From positions 236,618 through 300,617 of the forward strand of contig JAHDYR010000019.1 in NCBI GenBank assembly GCA_019828565.1: DNA of 64,000 nt, read 5' to 3'. This DNA comes from Carpediemonas membranifera BICM. Its lineage: Eukaryota; Protista; Fornicata. Below the pieces are notes generated by a model. The model was given only the letters and a program-made list of their open reading frames with translations. It was not told the DNA's origin and did no database searches. This document shows, piece by piece, positions 8,754-48,700 of this stretch (position 1 is its first letter; the number at the start of each line of letters is the position of its first letter). Both the position numbers and the translations under genes were made by a program.

Positions 8754-11700
8754 ATGATGACGACGGCGGAGGAGGTTGTTGCAGAGAAGTGGAAGCTTGT
8801 GCCAGCTTTTTTCAACACTGCATCGCTGATCCAGCACCACCTGGACTCCTTTGATTACTTCGTCCACACCGGTATGGTCAATATCATGAAGGCCAACCAG
8901 GTTGTGCGCTGCAAGGCCATTCCGAACTGGTATCTGCGCTTCGACAACATATACCTTAGCAACACAGGTCCTACTGAGTCCCAGGGCATGGTGGAGGACC
9001 CCATTACGCCCATGCAGTGCCGTCTCCGCGACCTCACATATTCCACAGCAATCCAGGCCGACATCTCCTACATGCGCGGCAACTCCCTCGTCCACTCCCA
9101 GGGCGTGCAGCTAGGCCGCCTCCCCATCATGCTGCGCTCCTCTTCGTGCCGCCTCAGGACGCAGTATAAGCTGGACAACGACCTCCTCGCACAGGCCGGG
9201 GAATGCCCGCATGATGCTGGAGGGTACTTCGTTTGCAAGGGTGTGGAGAAGGTGATTCTTATCCAGGAGCAGCTGTCCAAGAACAGGATCATCATCGAGA
9301 CGGACGCCAAGGGCGACATCTCCGCCACTGTGACGTCCAGCACGCACGAGCGGAAGTCACGGTGCTCCATCGTCTTCCGCAAGAACAGCTTCTACCTCCG
9401 CCACAACTCGTTTAGCGTCGACATGCCTCTCGTCGTCGCGATGAAGGCCATGGACGTCCGCACAGACCAGGAGATCATTCAGCTCATCGGGTCTGACCAG
9501 AAGTACTCGGAGTACCTTGCCGGGTCCCTAGAGGAGGCCTCTAGACTCAAGGTCTTTTCCCGCAAACAAGCGCTCGACTGCATCGGCCAGAAGATGAAGC
9601 AGCGCATGTACGGAGACCCCCGCAAGCCCCACGAGGAAGCATACGACGTGCTCCACGACGTAATCCTCAACCACGTCCCCGTCGACAGGGACAACTTCCG
9701 TCCCAAGGTGGTCTATCTCTGCAACATGGTTCGCAGAGTCATCATGGCGGTACGGGGCGAAACGAAGATGGATGATAAGGACAACTACGGCAACAAGCGG
9801 CTGGAGCTCAGCGGAGACATGCTCTCGATCTTGTTCGAAGACTTGTTTAAGAAGATGTGCTACGACATCCAGCGGGGCGCAGAGACGATGCAGAGCAAGT
9901 CAAACAAGGCCGCCGCATTCGACGCGCTAAAGTGCATCAGGCCCAAGAACATCACCGACGGCTTCGTACACGCGATATCCTCGGGCAACTGGTCGCTGAA
10001 GCGGTTCAGGATGGAGCGGTCGGGGGTGACCCAGGTCCTCTCCCGTCTCTCCTACATCTCGGCCCTCGGCATGATGACGCGCATGCAGTCCCAGTTCGAG
10101 AAGACCCGCAAGGTCTCGGGGCCCCGGTCCCTGCACCCGTCGACGTTTGGCATGCTGTGTCCCGCCGACACGCCTGAGGGAGAGTCGTGCGGCCTCGTCA
10201 AGAACCTAGCCCTGCTGTGCCACATCACGACGGACACGAACACAGTGCCGCTGAAGAAGCTCGTATACTCACATGGTGTCGAGGACTGCGAGACTTTGAG
10301 CGGCGACGAGATCAACAACAACTGGCTCGTGTTCCTCAACGGCGAGATCCTGGGCGTCCACCGTCGCCCCAAGGCCTTCGTGGACGCCCTGCGTTGGTAT
10401 CGCCGCCACGGCCACATCGGTCAGTACGTGTCCGTCTTCGTCAACGAAACCCTTAGGTCCATCACGATCGCCTCGGACGGGGGTCGCGTGTGTCGACCGC
10501 TCATTATCGTCGAGCACGGCCGCAGCTCTATCACCCCCCAGGACGTGGAGCGGGTCAGCTCGGGCGACGTGCCCTTCTCGAGCCTCATGCGGGCGGGTAA
10601 GATCGAGTATGTTGATGTCAACGAGGAGAACAACTGCATGATCGCGTTCAACGAGGCAGGCATCACCGACGAGACGACCCACGTTGAGATTGACCCCATG
10701 ACGGTGCTCGGCGTCTGCGCAGGCCTCATTCCCTACCCCCACCACAACCAGTCGCCCCGAAACACTTACCAGTACGTTCCACCCAACCCCACCCCCAGTG
10801 TTACACAGATGCGCCATGGGCAAGCAGGCCATCGGGGCCATCGCATACAACCAGTACGAACGCATCGACACGCTCCTCTACCTCCTCGTCTACCCCCAGA
10901 AGCCAATGGTACGCACCAGAACGATCGAGATCATGGCGTTTAACGAGCTCCCAGCCGGACAAAATGCCACTGTCGCCGTTATGTCCTATTCGGGCTACGA
11001 TATCGAGGATGCGACTGTCCTGAACAAGGGCTCGCTCGACAGAGGGTACGGCCGCTGTCTCGCGGTCCGTAAGCAAGTCACCACGCTGCGGCAGTACCCG
11101 GACAGCTCCGTCGACGTCCTCGCGGGCCGGCCCGTTGAGTACGCCCAGCTGCCCGAGCGGTTCGAGAAGTACTCGGCAATCGACGCGGATGGGCTCGCGC
11201 CGGCCGGGTCACGTCTAGCGCCGACTGGCACAGTCATCATCCACAAGCGGAGTCCTGAGACGATCGGCGGCGACATCTTCCCCGCATCTGAAGCCCCTGC
11301 CGCTGCCGCTCCTCGCGAGTACAGGGACGCGTCGGTCGAGTATCGCGGGCCGGTAACGAGCCACGTGGACAAGATGCTGGTCACCCAGCGAGACGACGAG
11401 GTGCTCATCAAGGCGCTCGTCAGAGACACACGCAGACCCGAGCTGGGCGACAAGTTCTCCTCGCGACATGGCCAGAAGGGCACGACTGGGCTCATAGCGC
11501 TCTCCGAGGACCTGCCGTTCAACGAGCAGGGGATCTCGCCCGACGTAATTATGAACCCGCATGGTTTCCCCTCGAGAATGACTGTCGGCAAGATGCTAGA
11601 GCTCGTTGCGGGCAAGGCGGGTGTGCTCCACGGCAAGTTCGGCTACGGCACTGTATTTGGCGGCACGCCGTACCACCAGATCGTCCAGGACCTCGTGTCG

Positions 11701-12162
11701 AGGGGGTTCAACTACGAGGGCAAGGACATGCTCTACTCGGGCATCACGGGCGAGCTACAGCCGTCGTACGTGTTCTACGGGCCTGTGTACTATCAGAAGC
11801 TGAAGCACATGGTGCAGGACAAGATGCACGCCCGATCCAGAGGCCCACGCGCCATGCTCACACGCCAGCCGACTGAGGGCAGGTCCCGCGACGGTGGGCT
11901 CAGGCTTGGTGAGATGGAGAGGGATTGCCTCATCGCGTACGGGGCAACGGGTCTCATCACGGAGCGGCTGCTGACTGCGTCCGACGAGTACGAGTGCAAC
12001 GTCTGCTCCAAGTGCGGCCTCATCGCCAGCGAGGGATGGTGCCAGTCATGCAAGTCCGGCCGCAACATCTGCATCATCCGCCTGCCCTATGCGTGCAAGC
12101 TGATGTTCCAGGAGCTCCAGTCAATGAACATTGTCCCCCGGCTGCACCTCGCTGACCAGTGA
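8754..12162 (+). CDS. RPC2: RNA polymerase III second-largest subunit; intron 10772-10808
   Basis: [91 protein letters not shown]. The two track ORFs are joined by a 37-nt GTACGT...ACACAG intron. Confidence 0.96.
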
Positions 12163-12299
12163 GTGCCGCAACATGAATATAAACTACTCTCGGATTGTGC
12201 TGAGAAGTTCGCTCGGTGGTAAGAGTTTAGGATGCTTTGTTGGGCTCAAATCAGCGTGCAATTCTAGTGATTTGAATTGTCAGATTTGCGCAAAACCGA

Positions 12300-13154
12300 A
12301 TGAACGACAAACTCGCTATCTCCCTTGCCGGCGTGCCCACTGAGGTGAATTCTGCGATGAAACTAACTCTTCCGGCGCTTAGGCGTGACTACAAGCTCAA
12401 GAACGCCGCTTTCTGGGGCGTAATCAAGGGCGATCTTCACGATTACTACATCTTCCGCGGCTTCACAACCGGAGACATCAAGGAGCAGCCCCTTGTGTTC
12501 TACTCGTTCACTGGTGCCGAGTGGGCACAGCTTCCTCCGCTTTCTCCCAAGCTCGTCGAGGCGATGAACAACCACGGCTACCACATCGACTGTCAGAAGC
12601 CCTTCACCGGCGACAGCTCTCTACTCCTCAACCCTCCCAAGGAGGAGGATGAGGCCGAGCCCGAGCCCGAAGAAGAAGAGGAGGGCGAGCAGGAGGCCAA
12701 GACGAAGCCCGAGCCCGAGCCCGTCACCACCGAGCTTCACCGGCTGAAGATGATGGTCGATCGCATCTCCCAGGACACTGAGATCGCCCCCATCGGGCTC
12801 TACTACCGCACATCCGAGGGGATCACGGTCAACCCGGCCTTTTCCGGAGTCAAGATCGAGGACGTCACCAAGCCCGCGAAATACGCGCTCAAGACAGCAG
12901 TAATCGAGTGCCTGAGCAAGGTTGACGGTGTAAACCCCGTCCCGGCAAGCATGTGGGTCACCCCGACCCTGGCTGAGTCCACCCCCAAGTACACCTGGAA
13001 GATCGAGTACGACGAGTCCGAGCAGCTCGTGCTGCTGAGGAACCAGTTCTACCCGGGCCACGTGGCGTACGTCGTGCCCCAGGCGGCGGTGTGCGGGTCT
13101 GTGTATTGCGGGACAGGTGTTTATGACGCAAGCCTGCCCTTTATGATCAGGTAG
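12300..13154 (+). CDS. RSPH9: Flagellar radial spoke head protein 9
   Basis: FWGVIKG...DYYI, EWAQLPP, FTGDSS, NPAFSG, VLLRNQFYPG, YCGTG...LPFM. Confidence 0.85.
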   Translation: MNDKLAISLAGVPTEVNSAMKLTLPALRRDYKLKNAAFWGVIKGDLHDYYIFRGFTTGDIKEQPLVFYSFTGAEWAQLPPLSPKLVEAMNNHGYHIDCQKPFTGDSSLLLNPPKEEDEAEPEPEEEEEGEQEAKTKPEPEPVTTELHRLKMMVDRISQDTEIAPIGLYYRTSEGITVNPAFSGVKIEDVTKPAKYALKTAVIECLSKVDGVNPVPASMWVTPTLAESTPKYTWKIEYDESEQLVLLRNQFYPGHVAYVVPQAAVCGSVYCGTGVYDASLPFMIR

Positions 13155-13264
13155 GCTGTTTAAAGTAAATGGATGACTCGAGTGTTATTTATGCAGTAAC
13201 AGGTGCCAAAACTGTTGATAATTGCACATAATGACCAATGCCAACATGTTTCCTCTGTCACCTC

Positions 13265-13391
13265 TGTCTTTGTATCTCTCATTGATTGGTACGATATGAT
13301 ATGATTGGTCTGAATACGCACGGTGTTATGCTCTCTTGATTCCAGTCGGGCGACGTCCAGCGACAGTGGCTCGCGGTTTGGGGGTCGACCC
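13265..13391 (-). repeat. Dispersed ~140-nt intergenic repeat, copy a (most diverged)
   Basis: On the minus strand shares GTCGACCCCCAA.CCGCGAGC, CTGGAATC, ACACC.TGCGTATTC and CAAAGACA with copies at 20322 and 30865. Confidence 0.6.
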
Positions 13392-14033
13392 GATTCGTGT
13401 CAGTCAGACCCCATGACAACCCGAGCTCCATCACTCGATATGGGGCGAGTATGCATGATTCATAGGCAATTCTGAAGCTATATCAGCCATCAATTTGGTT
13501 GGCGACTTGTTCACCTCACTTTCGAAGTCAACTCGAGACTGCGGGTCCGAAGCTGAGCAATGCCGTCACCTCGACCACCACCATCGAATCGCTGTCGCTC
13601 TGCCACGAGGCTTGTATAGCTCTCTAACACCTGGATCCGGGCCATTACCAGCGGGCGCACACTAGAAGTATGCGCTTGGAGTCGACCCAAACTTCGATTT
13701 CGATGGACATCGAACATGACGAGTAGAGGTCGGAGATGGCTGATACTCACATTCTTGCATCAAAATTGAAGGTCATACGGGATGGCTGACCCATCTTTAT
13801 TTTTTAAACTGCCAACCAAAATTTCTGAAGTTGCACGCGTGCGTCTATACGCATAGTCCTATGCGCCCTAACGATTCAGCCAGACATTAGTCCAGAGCAT
13901 CCCAACTCATGATTCCGTGTGGAGTCAATCTTCGAGTCCCGACCGAGGCGACAATAATCAAATGATGATCTCTATTGGTCGGAATCATGGCGCTGTTTAA
14001 CAATAACTGGAGCAATAACACGCTATCGCGCCC

Positions 14034-16286
14034 CTATACGTCGGCGAGCAGCCCCTTCAACGCTTGCACGTCAAAGACGCCGGGCTCAGCAGGCTTGTTT
14101 GCCCGACTTGCCTGGAGCGCGGCTACAAAGTCCGCAGGCCCTACTAGCACAAACCCGTGGCGGCCATTCGCCCTATCGTCACGGTGTGACGCGGCAGTGT
14201 GGATCGGGGATGTGATGGTAGGCGTCGCCCCAGCCGACATCACCGGCAGCGCGGTGAGTGTTGTTGGTCTACGGACCCCGGTCGCCAGCGTCAGATCGCC
14301 CACGTCGGAGTCGACAATGATTCGATATGTGTCGACCAGCGTCTGGCGGAGTCCGGGGATTGCCCTGCACAGACCGACGCAGGTGGAAAGCGAGTCGACT
14401 AGCATGCCGAACGTCGTCTCAACCTCGTCCTCGGCTTCGGCAGGTAACTCTGAGCCCGAGTCAGAGTCGATCCGGCCGGCCTCGGACAGGCACGATTTGA
14501 ACGTCTCGGTCTCGCTGTCTTCGACTCTCTCGAGGACCACGCCATCGACCTCTAGCGGCTCCTCTGCTTCCTCGTGTCCCGCCGACTCTACGGCCCTGAC
14601 AGGAAGGCTCTGGGCACTGTGCAAGGCGTGCGGGTTGGCCAGCAGCGGGACGAGGGCGGGTATGCCGTGTTCCTCGGTCAGGCGGCCGATGAAGTCGAGT
14701 ACAACGTCCCTGCCCCCCTCGGAGTCGACGCTGAGGACCCAAAGGTGCGGTAACAACAGCCCGAGACCATCCTGCAGCCGAGATAAGCTCCAGGCCAGTT
14801 CCTTGCAGGCCTCAAGGTGGGCCTCAGATGCATTGGCCTTGGCAACGTAGCAGACGATGCGTGTCATACCGACAAGCTCGTCAGCAGGGATACCGGTGAC
14901 GTAAGCCTCGGGGACCGCAACAAGGTTGGCGAGTGCGGACAAAACTACGGGCTGGAATTGGATCAGATTGGGCCTGGAGAGCTCACGAACCGCGCGCTGG
15001 GCATGTGATAGGAGCTCGAGGCCGATGGTGTGACCAAAGACGAGAGGCAGGCCCTGGGTGGCAAGGATCATGAGTGATTCAGATCTGATTCGTATCCCAA
15101 TAATCGACCCAGATCTCGCGATCTTTGCTATATCTCTGAGCAATGTGGCAAGCAAGTCCACCATCTGCGCCGAGCCCTCGAACACGTAGCTCATGGACTG
15201 GATGACGGCAAGGTACTCTTCGATCACACCGGTGACGTCGGCCTCGTCGTTAGCGAGGACAGTGATTCTGTCAGGAACGTTCTCGCACATGAATTTCGAG
15301 ATGAGTGGGAGTGCTGCGATGGCGCGTGCGTGGAAGTCTGACGCGTCGGCTTCAATCATCTTCTCGCAGACCATTGTGAAGGATCGGAGGAGGGTGAGGA
15401 GCTGTTGGATGGACAGTCGGCTGAGCTCGGCAAATATATACGTCATTATGGTGTATACATGACTGGTCTGGACTGAAAGTAAAACAGCCATCAAGTCGGG
15501 CATGACATCAATATACATGTGCTCATCGGTAGACAAGTATGCCATAATTCCAGCCATCAGGGGCTTGAATGACATCAGGTTCACAGAAACGAAGAGCTCT
15601 GCCAGGTCGGCCATGATGGCCTGATATAGCCCAGAACCCGTGGCATGGCGCCGGGACTCGTTCAGCATGTCCATCATGGTCGGCAGGAAGGCTCTGGTGA
15701 TGACAGTTGGGGCGGGTGAAACGGCGGTGGCGAGGACGGTGGCCATCATGTGGAAAGCACGCACCCGGATGTCGGCAACGCGGTCGGGGGCACCCGTGTC
15801 GAAGCTGGCGGCCCGCGCGATATGCTGGAGAGTCACGTCGGGCAGGGTCATGTGATATGGCCGGCGGGTGCCTGATGCCAGACTCTCGATGAGGTCCACC
15901 GTTTCGATGATATACACTGAGACGTCCTCGGCAAGCAGCGCGTCTATGCAGTCGTAGATGTAGGTGTCGAAGAGGCTGATATCATCGCAGCGTGTGATAA
16001 GCGCCTTGTACGCGCTGACAGTGGCATGAACATGCGCGGCGCGGAACTTGATAATGTCCCGCTTCAGTCTGTAGTTCAAATGCCGGCAGATGCGGGGCAA
16101 GCGCGATGGAGAGCTCTCTGCATATTGTGCAAGCTTGTCGATGCCCTTGGGGTTCGCCGTTGGCGTCAGGGGGGCGTTAATGTCCCCATGTCGCGGTCGG
16201 CGCGTATATATGTTATCAACGAATCGTCGATGCCTCGATTTAGGTCGACATATTGCTCGTGTAACAGCTCTAAGCTGATTGAGCAT
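14034..16286 (-). CDS. EFR3: EFR3-family protein (PI4KA plasma-membrane scaffold)
   Basis: N-terminal C-R-P..RHRRFVDNIY...IDKLAQYAESSPSRLPRICRHL..RLKRD matches the EFR3 N-terminus; start codon uncertain (16286 or 16331). Confidence 0.75.
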   Translation of the reverse strand: MLNQLRAVTRAICRPKSRHRRFVDNIYTRRPRHGDINAPLTPTANPKGIDKLAQYAESSPSRLPRICRHLNYRLKRDIIKFRAAHVHATVSAYKALITRCDDISLFDTYIYDCIDALLAEDVSVYIIETVDLIESLASGTRRPYHMTLPDVTLQHIARAASFDTGAPDRVADIRVRAFHMMATVLATAVSPAPTVITRAFLPTMMDMLNESRRHATGSGLYQAIMADLAELFVSVNLMSFKPLMAGIMAYLSTDEHMYIDVMPDLMAVLLSVQTSHVYTIMTYIFAELSRLSIQQLLTLLRSFTMVCEKMIEADASDFHARAIAALPLISKFMCENVPDRITVLANDEADVTGVIEEYLAVIQSMSYVFEGSAQMVDLLATLLRDIAKIARSGSIIGIRIRSESLMILATQGLPLVFGHTIGLELLSHAQRAVRELSRPNLIQFQPVVLSALANLVAVPEAYVTGIPADELVGMTRIVCYVAKANASEAHLEACKELAWSLSRLQDGLGLLLPHLWVLSVDSEGGRDVVLDFIGRLTEEHGIPALVPLLANPHALHSAQSLPVRAVESAGHEEAEEPLEVDGVVLERVEDSETETFKSCLSEAGRIDSDSGSELPAEAEDEVETTFGMLVDSLSTCVGLCRAIPGLRQTLVDTYRIIVDSDVGDLTLATGVRRPTTLTALPVMSAGATPTITSPIHTAASHRDDRANGRHGFVLVGPADFVAALQASRANKPAEPGVFDVQALKGLLADV

Positions 16287-16420
16287 CCTACGGCGAGAAC
16301 TGAATCCCCGTCTAGTTTTGCCAGATTTGCGCATTTTTAGAATAGCAGATGATCCAACCGACCAATGCAAACCTTGCCCCCCAAAGTCACGCATACAGCA
16401 GTCGCATAAGTATTTACATG

Positions 16421-19400
16421 TTACATCATGTTCATATCGTCGAGCTGGGGAAGCTCCTCCCTACTCGTTGGACGCATCGCCTGAGTGTCCTCGAGCTCGG
16501 CCACACGCTGCCGCAGCCGCACCATCTCCGACCGCTGGGCCTCGAGGTCACGCCGCAGCTGCTTCTCCGCGGGTCCGGCCTGGGCGACCTTGCCCGGGGC
16601 CGTCTGCATCGCCTGTGCCCTGACGCTCTTGAGCTCCTTCCGAAGCATGTTGATCTCCTTGATGAGTTCAACGTTCTCCTGCAGGATGTGTCTGTGGTCC
16701 GCAGACCGCACCCGAGTCTCTTTCTCGAGCTGAGTCTTAAGACCCCTCACAGTCCGCTCAAGGTAGACCCTCTGCCGCTCGTGCTCGTCCCTCAGATCCT
16801 CGTCGACGGCCGCAGCCTTGGCTATGCCGGTGACATGCTTCTTGTGCAGGGTCCTGGCCGCTTCCTTGAGCTTCTTAGGCTCCTGGATGAGCTGGACGAG
16901 GTCACCGATGTCTGCCTCCATCCCCTGGCGCCGCGAGTCTGAGTCCGCCAGCTTACGGCGTGTGGTAGCGCCGTCACGCTGGAGGGCGTCAATCTTGAGC
17001 TTGAGGTCAGTGATCTGGAGCTCGAGCCGGGAATTCTGCTTGTGGAAGCGCTCGAGCTCGGCGTCCATCTCTCGGATCTGCTCGTGCATTGACCCAATCT
17101 CAAGCTCGCGGGGCTCGATCTGTTTCTTGAGCTCCTTGATCTTGTAGTCGAGCACGAACTTGAATTTCTCGAGCTCCTGGTTCTTCTTTTTCAGGTCGTA
17201 TATCCTGCGCTCCTTGTCCGCGATCGTCTCATCTCTCTCGGTGATCTCCTTCCGGAGGCCTTCCTTGTCCTTCTTGTGGCCCTCGATCTTCTGGAGCAGG
17301 TCTTGTTGCACCTGGCCCTTCTTCTCGAGTTGCTCATCCTGCTCCTGGATGCGGTTCTTCAGCACGGTGAAGCGTCGCCGGAGAACGCCGTTCTCGCCCT
17401 TGAGACGAAGTGTCATGTCCTTTTCGCCGTCAAGCTGCGTCTCGTACGTGCGCCTCATCTCATCTAGCTCGGTATCGGCGTCATCCTCCATCTGGTCGCG
17501 CGTCTCATCAAACTCACGCTGGAGATCGTCGTTCTTCTGGAGAGCGTTCTCGAGCAAGAGTGAGAGCTCCTGCACCTTCTCCTCGTACGAGCTCGTCAGG
17601 TCCTGGATGATGCGTTCGTGCGAGGCAATGAGTTGGGCGGCATGCTCGTCCGCCTTCTTCGTGCCGCTGTCCCGCTCAGCTTGGAGAGCGGCGTACCTCT
17701 CGACCTCGAGCACGAGCTTCTGCTGGTACTGCAACTCAAGCTGCTGCAGCTCCTGCACGTGCTCCTCCTCTACCGTCTTCATCCTTCTCTGCAAGTTGAT
17801 CTCGAGCTCAGCCTTATCGTGCTCCGTCTGCTCGAGCTTGGCCTTCTCCCGCTCGACCTCCTCGCTCCATTTGGCTGACTCTGCCTTGAGTTCCTCTTGA
17901 TGTCCCATCTCTCTCAGCCTGAGTTGATACTCACCCTGCACGGTGAGCTCATCAATCTTAGTCTGCAGCTCGCGGACTAGAGCCGTCTTGTCAGCCATCT
18001 CGGTCCGGGCGACAAGGATCTCCTGGGCCTGGAAAGGCGCCTCACCACCGAGGGCGGCGGGGTCCTGGAGTTGGTGGACGAGAAGAACGCCGTCCATGCC
18101 AACAGAGACGATGCGGGTCCCGTCGGGGGTCACTCTGAGCTTGTGGATGAGGCCAGCGTGGGCGCCAGTCTCGAACAAGAGGTCCGCCCCCTTCGTCTCG
18201 TCGAAAGGCAGCGCGTACAGCCGCAGCGCACCAGTCGCCGTGCCAACAATCAGATGCGACTCGTTCGGAGTCACTGCCAGCTGCCTGGGGATCGAGCCCT
18301 GGGCGATCTCACCGACCACGGAGTCATCCATGATCTTCTTCACAGTCATGTCTGACGCCGCGGCGAGTATGGTCTCGCCATCCTTGCTCATGAGCACAGA
18401 CGTGTAGGGACATCCCTTGACGACGCAATCCTGCACCCTGCGCCCGTCGGGGAGAGACCAGGTGTACACTGCCCCGTCCATGCCGGCTGTGGTCAGGGTG
18501 GCGTCGCCCCGGCCCCAGGAAACAGCGCGGACCTTGCTGGAGTGGCCGCGGAGAGTTACGACAAGCTCGAATGTGTATACGTTGAATATGTAAACGAGTT
18601 GGTTTGAGACGGCAGCGAGGTACATGCCGCCCTGGGAAAACTCTAGCACGCGCACACCCTTGAGGTTGAACTCCTTGTGGTCGCGAATATCGTCGTTCAG
18701 CAGCGCCCCCAATCTGACGCGGTCGTTGATGGCCAACGCGATGTAGAATCCCGATGGGTGGAGGGCGACGGCATGTACCTGCTCGGCAAACTGCTTGGAA
18801 AACTCGAGCACGCGCTCCTCGTAGTCGTAGATGTTCAACATCTGGTCCCGGCCGACGGTGGCGATCAGTGGGCGGCGGAGACACAGGTCAGTGTCGACGC
18901 ACTCGCCGTTATGGCCGCCTAGCCCGACCTCCTGGAGGGTGATGGAGTTGTTAGACTCGCCATCGACTCTGGCGCGGAGTTCAGCCGACACCAAGTTGGT
19001 GTGGAGCAGGCTGCAGGCTGAAGTCACGAGGCACAACGCCTCGTGGGACGATGAGACCGCGATGGACGTAAAGTGCAGGGGCGCGGCATCACCACCGAGG
19101 GAGGCTGTGACTGAAGACATGACGGCACGGTCGCGGAGGTCTGACGGGACGGTGAGGGTGTGACCTGGCTTGAAGAGCTCGCGGCCCTCGGCTGGTTGGT
19201 AGACCACCGCCACGGCATTGTCGAGGCCAACCACGAAGCCCTGACCGAGAGTGGCGCAGCACGTGATGCGGGCGTCTGGCGTGCTTGGTTGGGCAGGTGG
19301 CAACGTCATCTTCACGTCACCCGTGGCGTCGGCGAGGAGGCAGCCGTGGTGCTCAGTGCCAACCACCACAGCGTTATCGTCGACCCAGCAGTGGCATGTA

Positions 19401-20462: not shown

Positions 20463-20572
20463 CGAGTCAAATGAACGAGTCAATGACTATCCGGCGTCTG
20501 CAAAGTCATTCACCCTGCCCGAGTCCAAGAACCTACAGATACTTTACCGATGGGCCTGGATAATGATACATC

Positions 20573-33908: not shown

Positions 33909-33987
33909 CATTTTATCGTTTTCTCATTTTTGATATGCTAGCCAACCCAGTCGACCGACACACCACAAACACGAGAATCAACACAGT

Positions 33988-38606: not shown

Positions 38607-39827
38607 CTATCCTTTCTTCGACTTCTGCGTCATCTCCAGAATGACCATCTCTAGCCGCTTGACCTCAAGCTGCGCCAGCCGGAGCTCACGCTGCATATTC
38701 CCCAGAAGCCCATTCTTCCGCGTGAGATCTTCACTCATTAGTGACAAAGCTGCACTCTGCTCCGAGATACGGCGGTCACGGCTCGAGATCTCGTCCCGCA
38801 GTGAGTTCATCACATTCATCTCCCGGCTGTACTGTTGCACCCAACCGTGTTTCCACTGCTCAATCATCGAGTTGATATGGGATACGGGGATCGGATCTGG
38901 CCTGTGGGTATCAGTTGAGATCATCAAACTCGAATCAGCCCAAGTTGGCATGAAAGTGTATCTTGCAGTCAAGATGGGATCCTCAATAAACCCGTTCCGA
39001 CTGAAGAACGGCACTGCGTCGATTCCTGCGAACACGATGAGCGTATCTCCACTCGTCTGGTCGATCAAATCCTTCAGAGTCACGACGAGTCGTCTCCCGA
39101 GCCCAAGTTGCTGGAATCTGGTACGCACACCGAGCAACGACAGCTGGTAGAGCTTTTCCTTAGGCACCAGGGTGTTTGGGACCAGCTCGAAAGAGATGGC
39201 AGCGACCAATCTATCCTTGAATTTGATTGGATCCTCCAGGTCGACCGGGCCCTGGATGTCCGACGGGAGGACCTCCCCGAAGTCCGACCTGGGGCCGGTG
39301 AACGAGGAGGTGGACTCACTCGACTCTTCCGAGTCTGTGTCCTCCTCTTCAGGGTCAGATTCAGTGGGGGTCTTCTCTGCACGGCGACGGGAGCGAAGGC
39401 GGTCTAGCTTGACATCCTCCACACTGCGGAGGACCGCGAAGGTGAGGTAGTACTCGTTTGAGAGGTATTCCCGCAGTGCTTTGTGGCCCATGTCGGGCAG
39501 GATGTGACGGTAGAGCGAGACAAGAGCCTCTTTCATCTCCAAATCATACTGAGTGGGCGTGTTGTGAGTTTGAAGTAGGTGCGTTGAAAGATGGATGTAG
39601 GCGTTCTCAAAGGGAAGAGTTAAGATGGATCCTGTGAGAAGCGTGTCAGGGCGGTGCTTCGTAGCATCCCGATCATGCCCTTGCTGCGGTTTTGTGTCTC
39701 TAAGCGTTAAACTGTAGAGAACGTCGTCCATTGAGGGAAAAGAAGCAAATAGGCGAACACTGGGAAGTGGCTTTGTATATATCGCATACTCACTGCCAAC
39801 GACCCAACCAGGCAGTGCTGAGGCCAT
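38607..39827 (-). CDS. GNAT acetyltransferase-domain protein with C-terminal coiled coil
   Basis: LGVRTRFQQLGLGRRLV (acetyl-CoA motif A), AVPFFSRNGF; start uncertain. Confidence 0.65.
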   Translation of the reverse strand: MASALPGWVVGSEYAIYTKPLPSVRLFASFPSMDDVLYSLTLRDTKPQQGHDRDATKHRPDTLLTGSILTLPFENAYIHLSTHLLQTHNTPTQYDLEMKEALVSLYRHILPDMGHKALREYLSNEYYLTFAVLRSVEDVKLDRLRSRRRAEKTPTESDPEEEDTDSEESSESTSSFTGPRSDFGEVLPSDIQGPVDLEDPIKFKDRLVAAISFELVPNTLVPKEKLYQLSLLGVRTRFQQLGLGRRLVVTLKDLIDQTSGDTLIVFAGIDAVPFFSRNGFIEDPILTARYTFMPTWADSSLMISTDTHRPDPIPVSHINSMIEQWKHGWVQQYSREMNVMNSLRDEISSRDRRISEQSAALSLMSEDLTRKNGLLGNMQRELRLAQLEVKRLEMVILEMTQKSKKG

Positions 39828-39931
39828 GCGCGGCCCCGGAGGAGGACTTCTGTCTCTCAAATGATAGCTGTCCCGCGTACTTTATTTACAGCATTCACGC
39901 GGCCCTTCATCCAGACATATCAAGCACCACC

Positions 39932-41416
39932 CTACTCAATAATGCCCCCGTTCTGGCACTCCGTGTAAGGCCCAGTCCACTTGCCCAGCGGTAACCACAG
40001 CAAACCAGAGGGGAACGAGAAGATACTGAGCATTGTCGCCAAGTTTGCCCAAAAGACGATGTGCCTGCGGAGGCTGTAGTCGCTCTTCTTGGGGAGTTTC
40101 GCGATCTGACACAATCTGGTTCGCTGAATGAGTATCTCAAGCGCCCATATAAATGCCACAAACACAGATCCAGGGGGGAAAACCCCGATCAACTGGACCA
40201 TCAGGAAATATTTGAAGCAAATCTCAAGATACGTAGATGCGGCCTCATATCGAATCTTATAAAATTTCTTCATCGCCCATGGTATTGCGATGAACGTCAG
40301 GGTATAGCCCAAGCTGTGGAACAGCAGTAGCAGCATCAGGAAGTATGTCATCGCCTCCATCGAGCAGCCCGGCGCCACAACTGCTAGGATGGTCAGGCTG
40401 ACCCAAGTGAGGGTGAATTTGAACAGCAGCACCCTGATATTGCGGACCATGCGCTTGGCCGCCCGAGTCCGGTGCATTTCGAATCGTGCGAGAACAAAAG
40501 AGAGCGGTGAAGCCGCCTGGAACCCTACAACATCTATTGCAGCGACGAGGGCGACTGATCCGACAGTCTGCCAGACGTAGCCATTCATGGGAACGTCCGG
40601 GTCAAACCGGGGCCTGGCTGGGGGAAGAACAACCAGGCTGAGAAGGACGGCAACGGCGAAGGGGGCGACTAGTCCGATTATAAAGACAGTGGTGGTCACT
40701 GTGATGAGGGCAGCATGCAGTGCAGAGGGCATCTTGGCCTTGAGCTCGTTATTAGTGGAGTCCAACAGGAAGGCGTGGGATAGCGGCAGGTGGGGGTCCC
40801 TCTTACGGCGGACAAGGTAGGTGTAGGCCGTCCAGAGAGAGAACAGGGCGGGTTGGACTGCGATGAGGAGGGCAACGAGGGCGAGCATGCAGACCCACGG
40901 CCACCAGATGCCAGGGGAGACGAATCGGGCGGCGTTTAAGCCGTTGATGACTGCAAATGGAGTCATCCACCAATCCTCGGCCTTGTAGCTGAAGTAGCTG
41001 GAGAAAAGCTGCGGGGCTGCGGGCAGTACACCGAGAACGCCTATGACTACGGACCAGAGAAGGAGATAGTCGAGGTAGTCGAACACCAGGCGGGTACGCA
41101 GACCCACACGCCGCTCGATGGAGGCCAGCTTGGAGAAGAACATCAGCTTCACGGACCGGAGCTGGTTGATGGGGTCGCGGTCGTGGACGGTGGGGTCGAC
41201 GAAGACCGGGCGGGAAAGGATGGAGACGCCTGTGAAGTGCCCGAGGAACCAATCGAACACGAGAAGTACCTTGGAGTGCTCGATCTCCTCCTCTTCCTCT
41301 TCTTCCTGGAAGGAACGGAGCTCATGGAAAGATTGGGAGAACGCCTGGAAATGAGCGTCTTGCATCACGAAATTCAGGGGATTAACAGATCCACGCCATC
41401 GAATTCCGCTTGACAT
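39932..41416 (-). CDS. Multi-pass membrane protein, TMC (transmembrane channel-like) family-like
   Basis: LASIERRVG...FDYLDYLL, LARFEMHRT...IRVLLFK, YEAASTYLEI...FPP resemble TMC segments; many hydrophobic helices. Confidence 0.55.
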   Translation of the reverse strand: MSSGIRWRGSVNPLNFVMQDAHFQAFSQSFHELRSFQEEEEEEEIEHSKVLLVFDWFLGHFTGVSILSRPVFVDPTVHDRDPINQLRSVKLMFFSKLASIERRVGLRTRLVFDYLDYLLLWSVVIGVLGVLPAAPQLFSSYFSYKAEDWWMTPFAVINGLNAARFVSPGIWWPWVCMLALVALLIAVQPALFSLWTAYTYLVRRKRDPHLPLSHAFLLDSTNNELKAKMPSALHAALITVTTTVFIIGLVAPFAVAVLLSLVVLPPARPRFDPDVPMNGYVWQTVGSVALVAAIDVVGFQAASPLSFVLARFEMHRTRAAKRMVRNIRVLLFKFTLTWVSLTILAVVAPGCSMEAMTYFLMLLLLFHSLGYTLTFIAIPWAMKKFYKIRYEAASTYLEICFKYFLMVQLIGVFPPGSVFVAFIWALEILIQRTRLCQIAKLPKKSDYSLRRHIVFWANLATMLSIFSFPSGLLWLPLGKWTGPYTECQNGGIIE

Positions 41417-41569
41417 TTGTGAATATAAGTTGGGGTTGGTGGTTTGCCACTCACGGCAACGTCGTAGGCTAAAAATGCACAGGGAAATATCTCTGGCATG
41501 GGCTGTCATCAGCCGCCAGGACAGCCCCCAGTGCCCGCCCCGTGTCCCCCATCCAGTATCGCGAGACAT

Positions 41570-42703
41570 TTACATGAGCTGCCTCTTCGCCATGTCCAAC
41601 ACCCGCCTCTCGCACTCCACAATGGCCGCCCCCCGGCCCCGCGGGCTCCCCAGCTGCCCCAGCCTCAGCTCCAGCAGCTTGCCGCACGCCTCCCTGATTC
41701 TAGGCTCCTCCGGCGGCCAGTCCGGCGATATTTCGTCCATGCCGAGGGCACTGCCGAGCAGCACGAGGATCTCCTCTGCATAAATAGCATCTGCTGCGGG
41801 ATCGTAGTGGATGGGCAGGTCGATATCGCCCAGGTCGACCCCGTCGGTCAACTCCAGGTACTCCTCGAGGAACTCGGGGTCCGCGTCGGCCACCTGAGGG
41901 CAGGCCTCGGCGAGCTGATCGCCAGTCACCCTCACAATATCGAACGGGTTCGTCTCCTTCTCCACGAAACCGTATTTCATCAAAAGATTTGCGGTGTCGA
42001 GGTCGCCGTACGTGTTCCACAGCTCCTGGCCCGCCCCGATGTCCGCACAGGCGACGACGTCGAATCCATCCCCAGCCTGAGTCACACTGACCGTGTTTCC
42101 CGCAGTTTTGTGGTTGAACGTGTCTCCGAACGGCGCAAGGACGGTGCCCCAAGACTCGTGGGTGAACGAGTAGCTCATGATGATGTAGCAAGCGTGCTGG
42201 AACATGGGCAGCGTCACGGGCTTGGGGAAGAAGTCCGTGTGAGAGGCGGTGAAGGGCTGGACGACAGTCGCGTACGTCGCTGCAATGCGCTGCTGGTTGT
42301 CTCTGATGTCGCCGAGCAGGTCGGTGCCGCTGAGCGTCTCCAGCTCGTCCTCGGTCCAGTGGAAGGGGAGCCACTTGGTTGTGGGGGCGGGCAGTGTGGC
42401 GAGGTACGGCTTCCACGCGGAGTCCGGCTGGAAGTAGAGCTCCCGGATGAAGGATAGGGCGAGGGGAACCCAGTCGCCGCTGTCCTCGGTAACAAGCGTC
42501 TCTATGTGCTCCTCAATGATGCTCCTGAGATCGCTGTTTTGGTAACAAAGGATGGCATCCGCTGGGATCCGTCCTACGGTGGTGTCCTTCGAGATTGACT
42601 TCTTGGAGATGACACCAAGGCCGGAAACTGTCCTAGTGGATACTTCTATCTCAGGAATGAGGTTGAAGCTCCTCTCTTGCATCCAATCGACGTAATCGTC
42701 CAT
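41570..42703 (-). CDS. SET-domain protein lysine methyltransferase (SETD6/Rubisco-LSMT-like)
   Basis: GLGVI, SAWKPYLATLP, LPFHW...EL..L.GT, IMSYSF, PFGDTFNH, GQELWNTYG, LLMKYGF. Confidence 0.88.
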   Translation of the reverse strand: MDDYVDWMQERSFNLIPEIEVSTRTVSGLGVISKKSISKDTTVGRIPADAILCYQNSDLRSIIEEHIETLVTEDSGDWVPLALSFIRELYFQPDSAWKPYLATLPAPTTKWLPFHWTEDELETLSGTDLLGDIRDNQQRIAATYATVVQPFTASHTDFFPKPVTLPMFQHACYIIMSYSFTHESWGTVLAPFGDTFNHKTAGNTVSVTQAGDGFDVVACADIGAGQELWNTYGDLDTANLLMKYGFVEKETNPFDIVRVTGDQLAEACPQVADADPEFLEEYLELTDGVDLGDIDLPIHYDPAADAIYAEEILVLLGSALGMDEISPDWPPEEPRIREACGKLLELRLGQLGSPRGRGAAIVECERRVLDMAKRQLM

Positions 42704-42822
42704 GTTTGTGATTGGCCTCCTGATGTGCTGCGCAGGATTAGAATTGTTGAGTCCAAAACACACAGTGATCCAAGCAGCATCAGGATCGCAGTGTGGTTCA
42801 TCATACTCTATCAATCGTGCGC

Positions 42823-44613
42823 TGCATATCACGCGCGCTGCAGCGCGTGTTTGCTCAACTTAGCAAGTTAATGATAGCGAGGAAGAGCACCTCTCTGGGA
42901 GTCGTAGTGGAAAGGAGATTGCTATATCTGATCTGAAGTTGCATCGAAGGTGCACCAAAGGATGTTCTCGCTGGCGCTCTTATCTCGGTGAGAGAGATTG
43001 AGAAGTATGTCTCTCTGCTCGGGATGCCGACGTAGCCGTTCAACGCGCCATGGAGCTCCCTCGCACGCGGGATTCTGGCAGAGCATGGTGCGGTGTGTGT
43101 GCACCACGCGTCTGAAGTGTGCTTTGCAGTATGGGCACACGATGGAAGTGCGGAATTCCGAGACCATCGTGACACTCACGACGACGTTGTGCCGGAGCAT
43201 GATGCCAGGGAGAGCTCGAGCAAAGTGGCGGTACGGAGCACAGGAGGGAGTGCCGGCGGAACAAAACAGTGCAGCCCCATACGCGACTTCGAGGTGAATG
43301 GGCTCCGGGGGGCGCCGAGATCATCCAGGAGTTGACGTCCAGCCCGGGCGAAGTGCTTCAGGCGCAGACGGTGATTGACAAAAGTCGCACGGCGGAAACA
43401 CTTTCTCGTCCCCTCGTTGAAGATCTGAACGATGTTCTCATGGACAAACCTAATCGACTGTTTGAGAGCCTCTAGACTTGTCGTTTTGAACGATGCTGCG
43501 CTCATATTCACGCGGAAAGAGGGGGTGGCAGTGTAGCCACACTTAGCGAGTACGCCAGATACACTCTGCCTGTCTGGGCGGCAGATCGTGTAGCCGCCCA
43601 GCGACCGAGCACCAGGGTCGAAGCCCATGAGGTGGGCATCGGGGTCTGGCGCGGGGCGAGCATCTGCGTCATCCACACCCAGACGCTCCCGAGCCTTTCG
43701 CTTCATCGTCGGGTTGCCACTGGCACGTCTGCTGACGTATGACAGAGCACCAACTTGGACCGTGAGGTCCACGGCGACCCCATCTGTCTTGACAGACAGC
43801 ACCCGACGGATGTTCGGAGGAAGAGCCTCCAGCTGCTCTCGCGTCATGCGCTCAGTGGCGTGATGCTCCGGGTCGACCCCAAGTTGGGCAAGCCAAGCCG
43901 GGTTCAGCACGTTGAGAGAACACGGAACGTGCATGAACCCGGGGCGGACCGGAGCCATCGGGACAAGCGGAACAAGCTTGGGGGCCCGCCAGCGGCTTGT
44001 CACCCGGAAGAGGTGGATGGGCGCAAGTGTGAAAGTACTTGGCCTTCGTGAACGAGCAGAGCCTGTTCTCCAATCCGGCGTAGAAGTCCGCGATGAAAGG
44101 AATCACGTTTCTACGGTTATGGAGAATGGAGGATATGGAGAACTTGACCGTATAGATGCTGGTCATGTGAAGCTCTGCGTTTTGCGGTGAATGAACCGAT
44201 CACTTGTTAACAACACACATCAAAGACGACAGACGTTTAATGAACGAGACTATGCAGTGATAATGGCGAGAATTAGAAGAACTGAAGTGTTTTATCTTCA
44301 GGCAGCGGCATAGAAGAGCCCGCTGTGCGATGGAAGGCCATGGTGATGATTGCAAAGACGTCATGATCAAGACCCCGAAATCCGACAAGCAGAAGAGAGC
44401 GGATGGAAGTAAGATGGGGTAGACGATAGGTGGGAAGCTATTTGCTTGGCGAGAGGACTGGAGAAGCACTGATTGATGACCCCCGACGATGATGACTGAC
44501 TATCGAAATATCACTCTCAAGAAGAAGGAAGGGAGAGCGGGAAGGGGTAATGAAGTATCATAGAGTGCACAGTGCAAGCAGTAAAGCAGGACTCTCGTTG
44601 TATCGAGACCTCA
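42823..44613. mobile_element. Fanzor-carrying element, copy B (inverted relative to A); terminal repeat 44551-44613 preceded by purine tract 44520-44547
   Basis: GAAGAAGGAAGGGAGAGCGGGAAGGGGTAA|TGAAGTATCATAGAGTGCACAGTGCAAGCAGTAAAG...CCTCA; other end is a divergent hairpin (42823-42857), boundary tentative. Confidence 0.72.
42922..44166 (-). pseudogene. Fanzor1-like RuvC nuclease, frameshifted and internally deleted but with D-E-D triad and Zn finger
   Basis: MTSIYTVKFSISSIL; LVPLVP; VKTDGVAVDL; MGFDPG (D); FKTTS...FRRATF; EVAYGAA; VSEFRTSIVCPYC (E); CQNPAC; HRDKSASENIL (D). Frame changes near 44020 and at G6 run 43307-43312. Confidence 0.9.
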
Positions 44614-44824
44614 CCTCCTTCCTGTGCACTTTAAGGGCCGGAGGTTGTAGCGTTCTCCTGCGCGGCACAGAGGTCGCCAAGGGTTGCCCGCGATGCGCTG
44701 TGCGTTATTCCGCCTCTTTTATCGTTTTCAGAGACATCGCCAGATTTCTGCTGGAAACTCCTTCATCAGATAATCGTTGATAGTAGGCCATGCCTTTATG
44801 GTAATATAGTCAGATATGCGCAGC

Positions 44825-45295
44825 CTACTTCTTCTGCTTGTTCTTATAGTCGGCCAGCGCAGCCTTGATGGCATCCTCGGCGAGCATAGAGCAGTGCAGC
44901 TTAACGGGCGGCAGCGATAGATGCGTGCTGATGTCGGTGTTCTTGATCCCGGCAGCCTCGTCCATCGTCTTGCCCTTGATCAGCTCAGTGGCGTACGAGG
45001 AGGAAGCGACAGCGGCGCCGCATCCGAAGGTCTTGAACACAGCCTCGGTGATGCGGCCCTCGTCATCGACCTTGATCTGAAGCTTCATGACGTCTCCGCA
45101 TGCAGGGGCACCAACGATACCTGTTCCAACGTCAACGGCGGTCTTATCCATGGCCCCAACGTTGCGGGGCTTCTCGTAGTGATCCAGGAGGTCCTGGCTG
45201 TAGCTACGGCTGCCGAGGATAGCAGAAGTGAGACCATTGACCATGTTTGGCATGCTAGTAAGCATAGAAGTCCGTGAAATAAGCACTGGAAGCAT
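44825..45295 (-). CDS. ISCU: Iron-sulfur cluster scaffold IscU with N-terminal extension
   Basis: LDHYEKPRNVG, GAPACGDVMKLQI, FKTFGCG, LPPVKLHCSMLAEDAIKAA; start taken as MLPVLISRTS. Confidence 0.95.
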   Translation of the reverse strand: MLPVLISRTSMLTSMPNMVNGLTSAILGSRSYSQDLLDHYEKPRNVGAMDKTAVDVGTGIVGAPACGDVMKLQIKVDDEGRITEAVFKTFGCGAAVASSSYATELIKGKTMDEAAGIKNTDISTHLSLPPVKLHCSMLAEDAIKAALADYKNKQKK

Positions 45296-45757
45296 TTCCT
45301 CAGTGTCGTGAAAGTGGCCGTGCACTCTATGACCCGCGGCATTGGGCTCATGAGAGGAACTCGGCCCAGCGGTACGTTGGGGTCGGTGATGGTGGCACGC
45401 TACCATGTCCATCTGTGAGACGACATTGTCACTCATGGGGGTCTGGCGGCTCACCTGAACAGTCTGCCCATCTACAGTCTGATTATGATTATCCCATGAA
45501 TACGCAGCTAACACCCACAAGTACAAACGACCGGCCCTCCACCTCATGCCCCGTATATGGCCAGCTCCCCACTTGATACTGCAGCTCGCCAGCACACCGC
45601 CACCACTGATCTCGGCAAGACTGCCCCGGAGCTGAACATCGTCGCTTGCAAATCAGTCTAGCAGACTGTCACCGCCACAAACAACGGCCGGCTCGCACAG
45701 CTCAGCTCATCCATCCCAACGTGTTGTAAAGGACATTTTATTCACATTCCACGCCAA

Positions 45758-48700
45758 TCAAACATCAGTCGTCCTAATGCGGGGTACGACGTTCATGCTC
45801 GTAAGCTCCTGCATCAGGAGTTTCATCGCATACGGGATGATTACGGACACGACCTCAGACGACCCGCACGCCTCGCACGCGTACGTCCCGGACCTGAGGT
45901 TCGCCAGGGCAGGCAGACCGCACCTGCCACACACGTGCATCTTGGTGATGTCAGAGTTCCTGAGCATCCGATCGATGATGAACGCGGTCGACCCGTGGGC
46001 GATGATGGCATCCCTCTCCATCTCACCAAACCTGAGCCCACCATCCCTGGCACGGCCCTCAGTCGGCTGGCGTGTGAGGCTCGCCACAGGTCCGCGGGGC
46101 CGTGCGTGCAGCTTATCGGCGACCATATGTTTGAGTCGCTGGTAGTATGTGGGACCGACAAAGACTGGCTCGGCCATGGGCTCACCCGTGCGGCCGTCGA
46201 ACATGCGTTCGGTGCCGTATCTGTTGAAGTGGAACTGGTGCAGCTCCTCGGCGATGCTTTCGACGGTAACACCGGTAAATGGCGTTGCGTCCTGCTCGAG
46301 ACCCTTAAGCGAGCCAACCTTGCCGAGCAGACACTCGATGAGCTGGCCAATGGTCATACGGGAGGGGATAGCGTGGGGGTTGATGATGATGTCGGGAGAC
46401 ACGCCGTCGATTGTGTACGGCAGGTCTTCCTGTCTAAACTGCATACCGCATGTGCCCTTCTGACCGTGACGAGAGGAGAACTTGTCACCAATCTGTGGGA
46501 CTCGGACCGAGCGGATCCTCACCTTGATGAACGGGGCGCCGCTCTCAGACTGGGAGACGAGGACCCGGTCGACGACTCCGCTCTCGACTGCTCTGAGAGT
46601 GTTAGATGAGTTGACGGCCTCGACCTTGCCTGAAGAGTCGCGGAGCTGCGAGCCGTCACGGCCGCGGGACTCACGGAGTTTGCCGATGACGGCGTCGCCG
46701 CCGATAACAGGGGTTCCTGGGGCAACGATACCGTCCATCTGGAGCTTGGCAAACCCACTGGGGTTCAGTCGCTTAATAGCGTACTTTGCCTTGTTCTCCT
46801 CTGAGATGGGGTTCGTAATGATCTCCTTAGTTCCGAAACTGTGCGAATCCGTGGCGTCGGCGTATGTGCGGTAGTAAGAAGACCGGAAGAGACCCCTATC
46901 CACGCCTGGCATGGACATGAGCACTGAATCCTCCTGGTTGAAGCCCGTGTGGCACATGATGGCGACAATGGCGTTCACACCAGCGGGCATGTCAGGATAG
47001 TGCATGTGCCGCATGACGCGGGTGGCGACGAGGGGCCGCTGGGGGTAGTGCATGACGTGCACAGCAGTGTCCATGCGGGTCTGGAAGTTCGAGACGTACA
47101 TGCCCATGGCCTGCTTGCCCATGGCGCATCTGTGTAACACTGGGGGTGGGGTTGGGTGGAACGTACTGGTAGACGTTTCGGGGCGACTGGTTGTGGTCGG
47201 GGAAGGGGATGAGAGAGGCTGTGACGCCGAGCAGGGCGGAGGGGTGGATCTCGCAGTGAGTATATGTGCTGTCCCCGCGGACCAGGGCCTGTTGGAGGTC
47301 GTTGATCGATGAGGCGACGAGACAGGCACACTCCTCCTCGTCAACGTCAACGTACTCGATGGCACCGGCGTGGACGAGGTCATTCCACGTCAGTCTGCCG
47401 TCCGTCACCATCCGCACGTCGCTCGAGGTCAGCTTGAGCTGGGGCTTGGCCGGCTGGTCGGGGGTCGACTCGGGTGTCTCGACCACAAGGATCGGCCTGA
47501 CCACCCGACCCGCGTCACACGTGACACGGATCTCCTTGTTCATACGGTCATAAGCGATGGATGTGTCGTACGCGATCATTCTCGTCCGACGCCGCTCGAG
47601 CAGCTCGTGGAAGACGGCCGTGGGCTCGTACACGACGCCCTCCCAGCACCCGTTGATGAAGAGCTTGGTGAGCGAGGCGAGGTCAGTCGTCGAGTCGGCA
47701 GTGTCCATATCTTCGATCGTCGTGATCTCAATAGATCCGTCCAGGATCGTATCAGTGAGATCGGATACGGAGGATCCGACCGAGACTTCGGTGAGCAGGG
47801 CCAGGTTCTTGACGAGGCCGACCTGGGCACCCTCGGGGGTCTCGGCGGGGCAGATGTAGCCGAACTGGGTGCCATGAAGCTGCCGTACCTTCGTCATCTT
47901 GCCCTGGTCCTTGATACCCGCGTCCAGGCGCCTAAGATGTGACAGGGCACTGACGAATGAGAGCCGGTTGAGCTCCTGTGTCACGCCCGTGGCGGCACCG
48001 GCGGACTTGTCTGCAGACCAGTTACCCGAGCCAATGCAGTAGCGGAAGCCGGCTGTGATGATGGAATCGTCGATGAGGTTGGCGTGGGTTGTCAAGTCGA
48101 CAAAGTCAATAGAAGTCTTGAGTCGATTCCGGAGTCTGCGCTGGAGATCACGGCGGACACGAGCGAAGAGGCCTCGGAAGAGCTCCGTCATGAGTGTCCC
48201 AACCATCTTCACACGCTTGTTGGCGTAGTGATCTCTGTCATCAGGTCCCTGGCGGCCCAGGACGACGCTCAGCATCTTGTGAACCATGTAACCGAGGTAG
48301 TAACTCTTGCGGTTAGCGCTCGAGTCGCCCTGGCCCACGTGGGAGAGGAACTCGCGGTAGAGGATGCCTCTGGCCATGTCGATGCGGTCCTCGCGCTCAT
48401 ACACCTCGTATCTGTCCGAACGGAGGTTCTGGTTAATACGCTTGGAGATGAAAGCGAGTGCTCCATCCTCAGTTTGAAGGGCGCGGTCCGTGACGGGGTC
48501 GCCCCCGTGCATGAGCTCGAAAGAGGGCAGGAGCTCGCGGGCCATCTCATCGTCCTCGTTGGAGAAGATGACGCGCTTGATGATGTCCCGGTCCGTGAGC
48601 ACCGAGAGGCCTCGGAACACGAGGACAAGGGGCACCTCGCCGCGGCCGTACGGGACCTTGACGTCGATAGCGCCGACACTGCTGCCTGTGCCGTAGCGCT

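Follow-up and report, generated by a model that had tools for sequence, protein, structure and literature searches.

How two genes that have been separate since before the last eukaryotic common ancestor come to carry the same intron, letter for letter and within the same codon, is the question raised by a stretch of 64,000 nucleotides (nt), in the following called the window, which belongs to contig 19 in the assembly of Carpediemonas membranifera (69 contigs with 24.2 Mb in all). The genes are RPC2 and RPB2, whose products are the second-largest subunits in RNA polymerase III (Pol III) and RNA polymerase II (Pol II), respectively, and which lie inverted on the one contig (RPC2 on the + and RPB2 on the - strand) with 36 kb between them. 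As set out below, the evidence argues with good confidence for a micro-tract that has been recurrently homogenised between RPC2 and RPB2 by ectopic gene conversion, the intron having most likely been transferred together with the Cys codon that adjoins it.

The initial annotation of the window, made from the sequence alone, had proposed one recent conversion from RPC2 to RPB2. Ectopic conversion between the two genes is well supported and has been strengthened by the finding of the same homogenised tract in a second species; the single event, instead, gives way to recurrent ones, each genome having, in common to both paralogues, synonymous codons of its own and an intron with its own sequence and place (the two places differ by 3 nt).

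An identical intron within a 66-nt tract

In both genes a Gln codon (CA/A, the slash marking the splice junction) is split by the intron and directly followed by a Cys codon. The two copies of the 37-nt intron are identical as had been annotated (0 mismatches), and they are the only ones in the window, where dinucleotide shuffles expect none; also in the whole 24.2-Mb assembly the copies number two, even with 3 mismatches allowed or with a 92-nt BLAST query. This genome-wide count, which had been suggested as a check, excludes an introner: a mobile intron family is rejected with only two copies, both at homologous sites.

The perfect identity of 66 nt that had been reported is the longest exact match between the two genes, and comprises 5 exon nt, the 37-nt intron and a further 24 exon nt. 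Outside the tract, RPC2 and RPB2 are approximately 52% identical, and their next-longest exact matches (24, 23, 20 and 18 nt) all fall in highly conserved motifs. As a control, the three largest-subunit paralogues of the same genome were compared, and their longest shared exact match is 23 nt, with no longer shared tract in any of them. RPA2, the third and last member of the second-largest-subunit family in this genome (contig 26), matches RPC2 or RPB2 over 16 nt at most and is not involved in the tract. With control pairs reaching 23 nt at most, only the 66-nt tract exceeds the background.

Codon usage leads to the same region. Seventeen consecutive positions with identical residues use the same codon in RPB2 and RPC2, the gene-wide background of same-codon use being 54%, and the probability of a longest run of at least 17 is approximately 0.001. 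Two of the codons in the run are rare in these genes: CGA makes up 6-7% of their Arg codons and CAA 9-20% of their Gln codons; the joined coding sequences of RPB2 and RPC2 entered these local codon statistics only. The intron-bearing micro-tract is thus real and statistically clear.

The observation that only amino-acid-changing differences precede the intron holds over 13 codons (Y/F, H/D and T/V), the first synonymous difference (ATT/ATC) being found one codon further upstream. Within these codons, a 23-nt identity on the far side of the T/V codon, which includes CGA, the rare Arg codon common to both genes, may be an older portion of the tract, although in length it does not exceed the background of the control pairs (23-24 nt). 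At the T/V codon itself, RPB2 carries Val (GTC, 47172-47174, -) and RPC2 carries Thr (ACT, 10764-10766, +), as do nearly all homologues; all three bases differ at this edge, despite the 23 identical nt upstream and the 66 downstream. Elsewhere, the 24-nt exact match in ..LTRQPTEG.. (11857-11880, +, against 46055-46078, -), in which Thr is encoded by the less frequent ACA and ACT, is probably due to chance, being within the control range, the alternative being a second small conversion patch.

Gene structure and splicing

The claim of a single intron per gene is borne out for RPB2 by RNA and for RPC2 by its two-exon model (table 1). A 3647-nt RNA-derived contig spans RPB2 from 49436 to 45753 with zero differences and one joint, which skips exactly the 37-nt intron; the skipped segment ends with CT..AC on the + strand, i.e. 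GT..AG on the gene strand. It follows that the RPB2 intron is spliced as predicted, that there is no second intron and that the Cys codon is present in the messenger RNA (mRNA), which answers the request for a splicing check on this gene. The identical contig is held in two RNA-like collections (each of approximately 11 Mb of contigs), which are probably one data set filed twice and were counted once. After splicing, the exon stretch common to RPB2 and RPC2 is only 29 nt, less than the 31-nt words assumed for the contig builder, so that the RPB2 contig is probably not a mix of both genes.

RPC2 without the intron reads ..NTYQCAMGKQ.. and gives a protein of 1123 amino acids (aa), which matches the database protein P0088 (1123 aa) at 100%. 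Splicing of the RPC2 intron is predicted from this reading frame and from the annotated protein; an exact-protein look-up of P0088 for transcript evidence of RPC2 returned no match. In RPA2 the reading frame is unbroken across the corresponding site, there is no intron, and the equivalent Arg and Gln codons are CGT and CAG. The database searches reported here were run exon by exon, the joined proteins being represented only by the database entries P0001 (RPB2) and P0088.

Table 1. Position of the RPC2 and RPB2 features in the window.
Feature	Position	Strand	Description
RPC2 exon 1	8754..10771	+	Open reading frame and translation; RNA polymerase III second-largest subunit, closest relatives are RPC2 proteins; 3' end (10771) is CA of the Gln codon
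RPC2 intron	10772..10808	+	37 nt, GT..AG, phase 2 in the Gln codon
RPC2 exon 2	10809..12162	+	First base A completes Gln; Cys codon TGC at 10810-10812
RPB2 exon 1	47167..49439	-	RNA polymerase II second-largest subunit; 3' end is CA of the homologous Gln codon
RPB2 intron	47130..47166	-	37 nt, same sequence as the RPC2 intron
RPB2 exon 2	45758..47129	-	Cys codon TGC at 47128-47126, Ser in other RPB2 proteins
66-nt tract, RPC2 copy	10767..10832	+	Maximal exact match; T/V codon at the upstream edge, I/M codon at the downstream edge
66-nt tract, RPB2 copy	47106..47171	-	Maximal exact match (47171-47106 in gene direction) and alignments
23-nt identity, RPC2 copy	10741..10763	+	Upstream of the T/V codon; includes the rare shared Arg codon CGA
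23-nt identity, RPB2 copy	47175..47197	-	As above

A Pol III-type cysteine in Pol II

The residue that follows the split Gln codon had been described as Ser in RPB2 and Cys in RPC2 as a rule, with the RPC2-type residue in the RPB2 of this organism. Counts over the proteins returned by the searches agree with it: among 154 RPB2 homologues the residue is Ser in 152, Ala in one and Cys only in C. membranifera, and in RPC2 homologues the equivalent residue is Cys in 117 of 118. Its counterparts are Ser771 in yeast Rpb2 and Ser726 in human RPB2, and it lies two residues after Tyr769, which we take to be the 'gating tyrosine' of Pol II, in the hybrid-binding region. The presence of a Pol III-type Cys in Pol II amounts to a natural mutagenesis experiment.

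Two donor-type exon markers adjoin the RPB2 intron, namely the RPC2-type Cys codon and the shared rare CAA codon. By the first of these, RPC2-type sequence has demonstrably entered RPB2 directly next to the intron.

The same tract in a second Carpediemonas-type genome

In a collection of 5.8 billion proteins, the closest relatives of both proteins are encoded on short contigs of GCA_002919055.1 (identity of 47% for RPB2 exon 1, next best 38%; 67% for RPC2 exon 1, next best 56%). The C. frisia assembly was built with SPAdes (PMC5437931), and GCA_002919055.1 is probably this metagenome bin of Carpediemonas frisia (PMC5437931, PMC8516963), a label that is based on its closest-relative status, its GC content and a SPAdes-type contig overlap of 55 nt.

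The gene calls of the relative's RPB2 and RPC2 both end at ..NTYQW and a stop codon, with an intron following. In RPC2 (contig L007) only one GT..AG intron keeps the reading frame; it is 31 nt long (4446-4476) and comes after the TG of the Cys codon and, therefore, 3 nt downstream of the C. membranifera position. The RPB2 contig (L003) stops inside its intron, and its final 55 nt, made up of 31 nt of exon and 24 nt from the start of the intron, are those of RPC2; this is the only match of at least 14 nt between the two genes of the relative. A length of exactly 55 nt is that of a graph break at a repeat with k=55, so that the contig break is itself evidence that the loci share at least 55 nt. 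At the Ser/Cys codon, the relative's RPB2 reads TG-, i.e. of the Cys type and not Ser. The 3' half of this RPB2 was not among the matches of the protein search with RPB2 exon 2.

A four-way alignment of the paralogues of the two species shows how they group. In C. membranifera both paralogues have TCG for Ser, CGA for Arg and CAA for Gln, and both paralogues of the relative have AGC, AGG and CAG at the same positions. The 5' splice site is CA/GTACGT in both genes of the former and TG/GTAAGT in both genes of the latter, and the intron is 37 nt long in both genes of C. membranifera and 31 nt in RPC2 of the relative, its first 24 nt being seen in RPB2. Beyond the splice signals, the introns of the two species have little in common. 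Counted over the exon positions of the tract, identity between paralogues is 27/30 and 30/30 within species, against 22-24/30 between species, while in the 600 nt upstream of the tract the paralogues are 52-58% identical and the RPC2 orthologues 70%. The paralogues thus cluster by species within the tract (of which 55 nt are seen in the relative's RPB2) and by gene outside it. Such grouping is the signature of gene conversion after the species had separated. At least two conversion events are needed, and, on the alignment, a change of intron position that is common to both paralogues would be very hard to explain otherwise than by conversion.

Proposed mechanism and direction of the conversion

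Recurrent ectopic conversion is thus the best explanation of the tract, and a sequence of steps can be proposed for it. A tract of approximately 66-90 bp that surrounds the best-conserved motif in the subunit (..HNQSPRN-YQ-C/S-AMGKQA..) would be repeatedly homogenised by ectopic (interlocus) conversion between RPC2 and RPB2. Codons biased in GC content at the third position (GC3), when they encode a peptide that is invariant in both enzymes, would make the DNA much more alike here than elsewhere in the two genes and may provide enough local nucleotide identity to seed strand invasion between the inverted loci, and, once a first conversion has occurred, an identity of at least 60 nt would favour repeat events. 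The edges carry residues by which the paralogues differ (F/Y and D/H on the upstream side, M/I on the downstream side), and these may mark where conversion stops or where selection has removed its product. These residues distinguish RPB2 from RPC2 in all eukaryotes among the homologues compared, and a tract that ends at enzyme-distinguishing residues is consistent with selection against longer tracts. Metamonads are without non-homologous end joining (NHEJ), and the repair of breaks in them is considered to require homologous recombination (PMC8516963); this dependence may raise the rate of ectopic conversion.

The direction from RPC2 to RPB2 that had been put forward stands in part. It is the best inference for the original entry of Cys only, given the near-universal Ser of RPB2. 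For the latest conversion in C. membranifera the direction cannot be told, since the RPB2 of the relative also reads TG-; the Cys entered RPB2 either before the species split or more than once.

Some findings weigh against this account and should be taken together. Tracts so short between genes that are approximately 52% identical are unusual for homologous recombination. The T/V edge codon, which differs at all 3 bases, is unexplained by simple post-conversion drift. The intron sequence at each locus rests on the published assembly, the RNA contig verifying the exons and the joint, and the copy of the tract in the relative's RPB2 covers 55 nt, the contig ending inside the intron. Finally, the outgroups sampled for absence of the intron from RPB2, Ciona and Nannochloris, are distant only.

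Origin of the intron

Whether the intron itself moved between the paralogues, as had been claimed, is a separate matter. Its transfer from RPC2 to RPB2 is the most economical reading, likely but not proven, in view of the presence of one intron per gene in Carpediemonas and of the entry of an RPC2-type Cys beside it. In the four eukaryote genes sampled, RPB2 of Ciona and Nannochloris and RPC2 of Planoprotostelium and Branchiostoma, the junction has no intron, so that a widely conserved ancient intron is not seen in these. The two animal genes, Ciona RPB2 and Branchiostoma RPC2, have introns a few codons from the junction.

The alternative that survives best, unlikely as it is, holds that an intron at this site came to both paralogues by descent, from before the duplication or from an early fornicate ancestor, and that conversion homogenised its sequence with no transfer. 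Intron positions shared between paralogues older than the last eukaryotic common ancestor are, indeed, common in reconstructions (PMC9120149), and in an unrelated GC-rich eukaryote the RPC2 gene is interrupted by an intron in the same place, in phase 2 of the Gln codon. Against it, besides the four genes just mentioned, RPA2 of the same genome has no intron here, the retention of the same rare intron in both Carpediemonas genes, with one intron each, would be a coincidence, and the derived Cys next to the intron shows RPC2 sequence entering RPB2 at that very place.

The unrelated eukaryote is represented by contig L071 of a microbial-mat metagenome, found by a degenerate-pattern scan of metagenome contigs. 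Its last 83 nt (- strand) show the RPC2 intron as CA/GTGAGT, and the contig stops before the 3' splice site; the eukaryote has a GC content of 64% and is apparently multi-intron. It was considered as a Carpediemonas relative and rejected, in the light of its 35% identity to C. membranifera RPC2 and of frame breaks, which point to several further introns within a contig of 1.2 kb.

An intein hot spot at the same junction

For RNA polymerases, inteins in the second-largest subunit are already known (Goodwin, Butler and Poulter 2006, PMC1635734). In the degenerate-pattern scan, approximately 70 metagenomic RPB2-like genes (among loci L012-L099, e.g. L013:887-1885:+, L021:7611-8945:- and L087:4753-5220:+) have a frame that runs on after ..YQ into an insert beginning with Cys-Leu, which starts exactly between Gln and Cys/Ser of ..NxYQ/(C/S)xMGKQ... 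In 28 of these inserts the end is recognisable as ..(H/G/S)N/(C/S)xMGKQ, and their length is 143-497 aa. L021 and L087 exceed the cut-off for Pfam Intein_splicing, and the intein domain was also present in three RPB2 homologues from the first protein search. The Pfam matches identify the inserts at the Gln/Cys-Ser junction as inteins, and the junction, therefore, as an intein insertion hot spot. Many of the genes are on contigs from 20 kb to more than 250 kb, and probably belong to giant viruses and to some eukaryotes.

With respect to the intein insertion point, the Carpediemonas introns lie at -1 nt (C. membranifera) and +2 nt (the relative). A divergent RPB2-like gene with ..IPYPDHNQSPRNVYQC.. 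(L051:6309-6440:+; L088 and L099, both -) has spliceosomal-type introns 1-4 nt from the junction: in L051 and L088, which have the same sequence, the intron comes after the G of the Ala codon, and in L099 after the T of the Cys codon, the two positions lying 3 nt from each other. The N-terminal peptide of these three recurs in L021, where an intein follows it. This gene is a second lineage in which intron and intein alternate at the junction.

In the Carpediemonas RPB2, RPC2 and RPA2 genes no intein or homing endonuclease was found, the frames being continuous but for the 37-nt intron. The sole intein-domain match in the genome (C54:605708-606739, +) has 29.7 bits, below cut-off, and falls inside an open frame of 1234 aa. 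The link between intron and intein in Carpediemonas is positional only.

It is, nevertheless, tempting to consider that double-strand breaks made at the Gln/Cys-Ser junction by intein-encoded homing endonucleases, of a past intein or of infecting giant viruses, drive the whole pattern, an extension that is rather unlikely. Without NHEJ, a cut paralogue would be repaired from the other, leading to a very local and recurrent tract; occasional imprecise repair might create or shift a tiny intron (-1, +2 nt); and the intron, by splitting the recognition sequence, would shield both genes against renewed homing. That the site coincides with an intein hot spot offers, at any rate, a testable link among homing endonucleases, intron gain and paralogue conversion.

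Artefact, RNA-level transposition and selection

An artefact of assembly or polishing, in which one locus would be overwritten by reads of the other while the true introns differ, is very improbable. It has in its favour that read-level support comes from RNA-derived contigs only and that the assembly combined long reads with short-read data (PMC8516963). However, the flanks of the tract are approximately 52% identical, so that reads of 100-150 nt should not cross-map, and an independent RNA assembly confirms the Cys codon as well as the exon portion of the tract. Furthermore, an independent short-read assembly of a second species has the same identity between paralogues with a different sequence.

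Even less credit can be given to transposition at the RNA level, by which the excised RPC2 intron would be reverse-spliced into RPB2 mRNA and fixed through recombination with the complementary DNA. Intron transposition is one of the proposed mechanisms of gain (PMC3443670), and the flanking exon sequence is nearly the same in both mRNAs, so that the same site could be recognised. Reverse splicing, however, moves an intron alone, and here the exon markers (the Cys codon and the rare CAA) moved too; moreover, the 3-nt change of position is common to both paralogues of each species, as copying of a DNA tract predicts. Selection to keep the intron identical as a shared functional element, e.g. for the co-regulation of Pol II and Pol III subunits, has nothing direct to recommend it beyond the thought that homologous subunits might be co-regulated, and is scarcely credible when the introns of the two species differ in sequence, length (37 against 31 nt) and position, and when it would not fix synonymous exon codons as well.

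Relation to known systems

Recurrent conversion with probable transfer of the intron is a mechanism of known kind; what is notable is the age of the paralogues, the tiny size of the tract, the fact that it recurs and the change to a near-invariant residue. The transfer of introns between paralogues has been proposed as a route of gain, with very few supporting cases: it was proposed for the globin genes of Chironomus, and by 2012 three cases, in Mycosphaerella, Aspergillus and Chironomus, were regarded as unambiguous (Yenerall and Zhou 2012, PMC3443670). As in those, the intron of RPC2 and RPB2 is at a homologous position, of near-identical sequence and inside a converted exon tract; unlike in those, the tract is only approximately 66-90 bp long, recurs in two species and alters a near-invariant residue of an essential enzyme. 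With intron transfer being probable, the case is unusually clean, given a tiny and unique intron, a donor-type residue adjoining it, splicing confirmed in RPB2 and a second species that replicates the pattern with its own sequence.

The concerted evolution of paralogues in Caenorhabditis (PMC3966223) offers a second parallel, with grouping by species in the tract, grouping by gene outside it and sharp boundaries set by selection. Concerted evolution usually involves, however, young and highly similar duplicates over hundreds of bp, whereas the RPC2/RPB2 tract is an island in saturated ancient paralogues. Introners likewise place identical introns at more than one locus, but in many unrelated genes, while here there are two homologous sites.

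A system described in 2013 (PMC3749507) resembles the present situation, in which a spliceosomal intron lies within 1-2 nt of the codon junction used by inteins in homologues, except that the Carpediemonas polymerase genes yielded neither an intein nor a homing endonuclease. The inteins of PMC1635734, too, sit close to the active site, where RPA2, RPB2, RPC2 and viral homologues are most conserved; they differ in being protein-splicing elements, at six sites.

Genes of such age can, it appears, still exchange DNA at an island of extreme conservation. This matters for phylogenies based on RPB2 and for the reading of intron positions shared by ancient paralogues as pre-duplication introns, where intron transfer has been mentioned as a possible source of such positions (PMC9120149).

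The start of RPB2

RPB2 has its first in-frame ATG at 49439 (-); on this side the RNA contig extends to 49436. The public protein P0001 starts 38 codons later (MPAVINRQ..; window 49325-49439, -). The public model may, therefore, be truncated at the N-terminus, the protein of the relative aligning from the upstream start.

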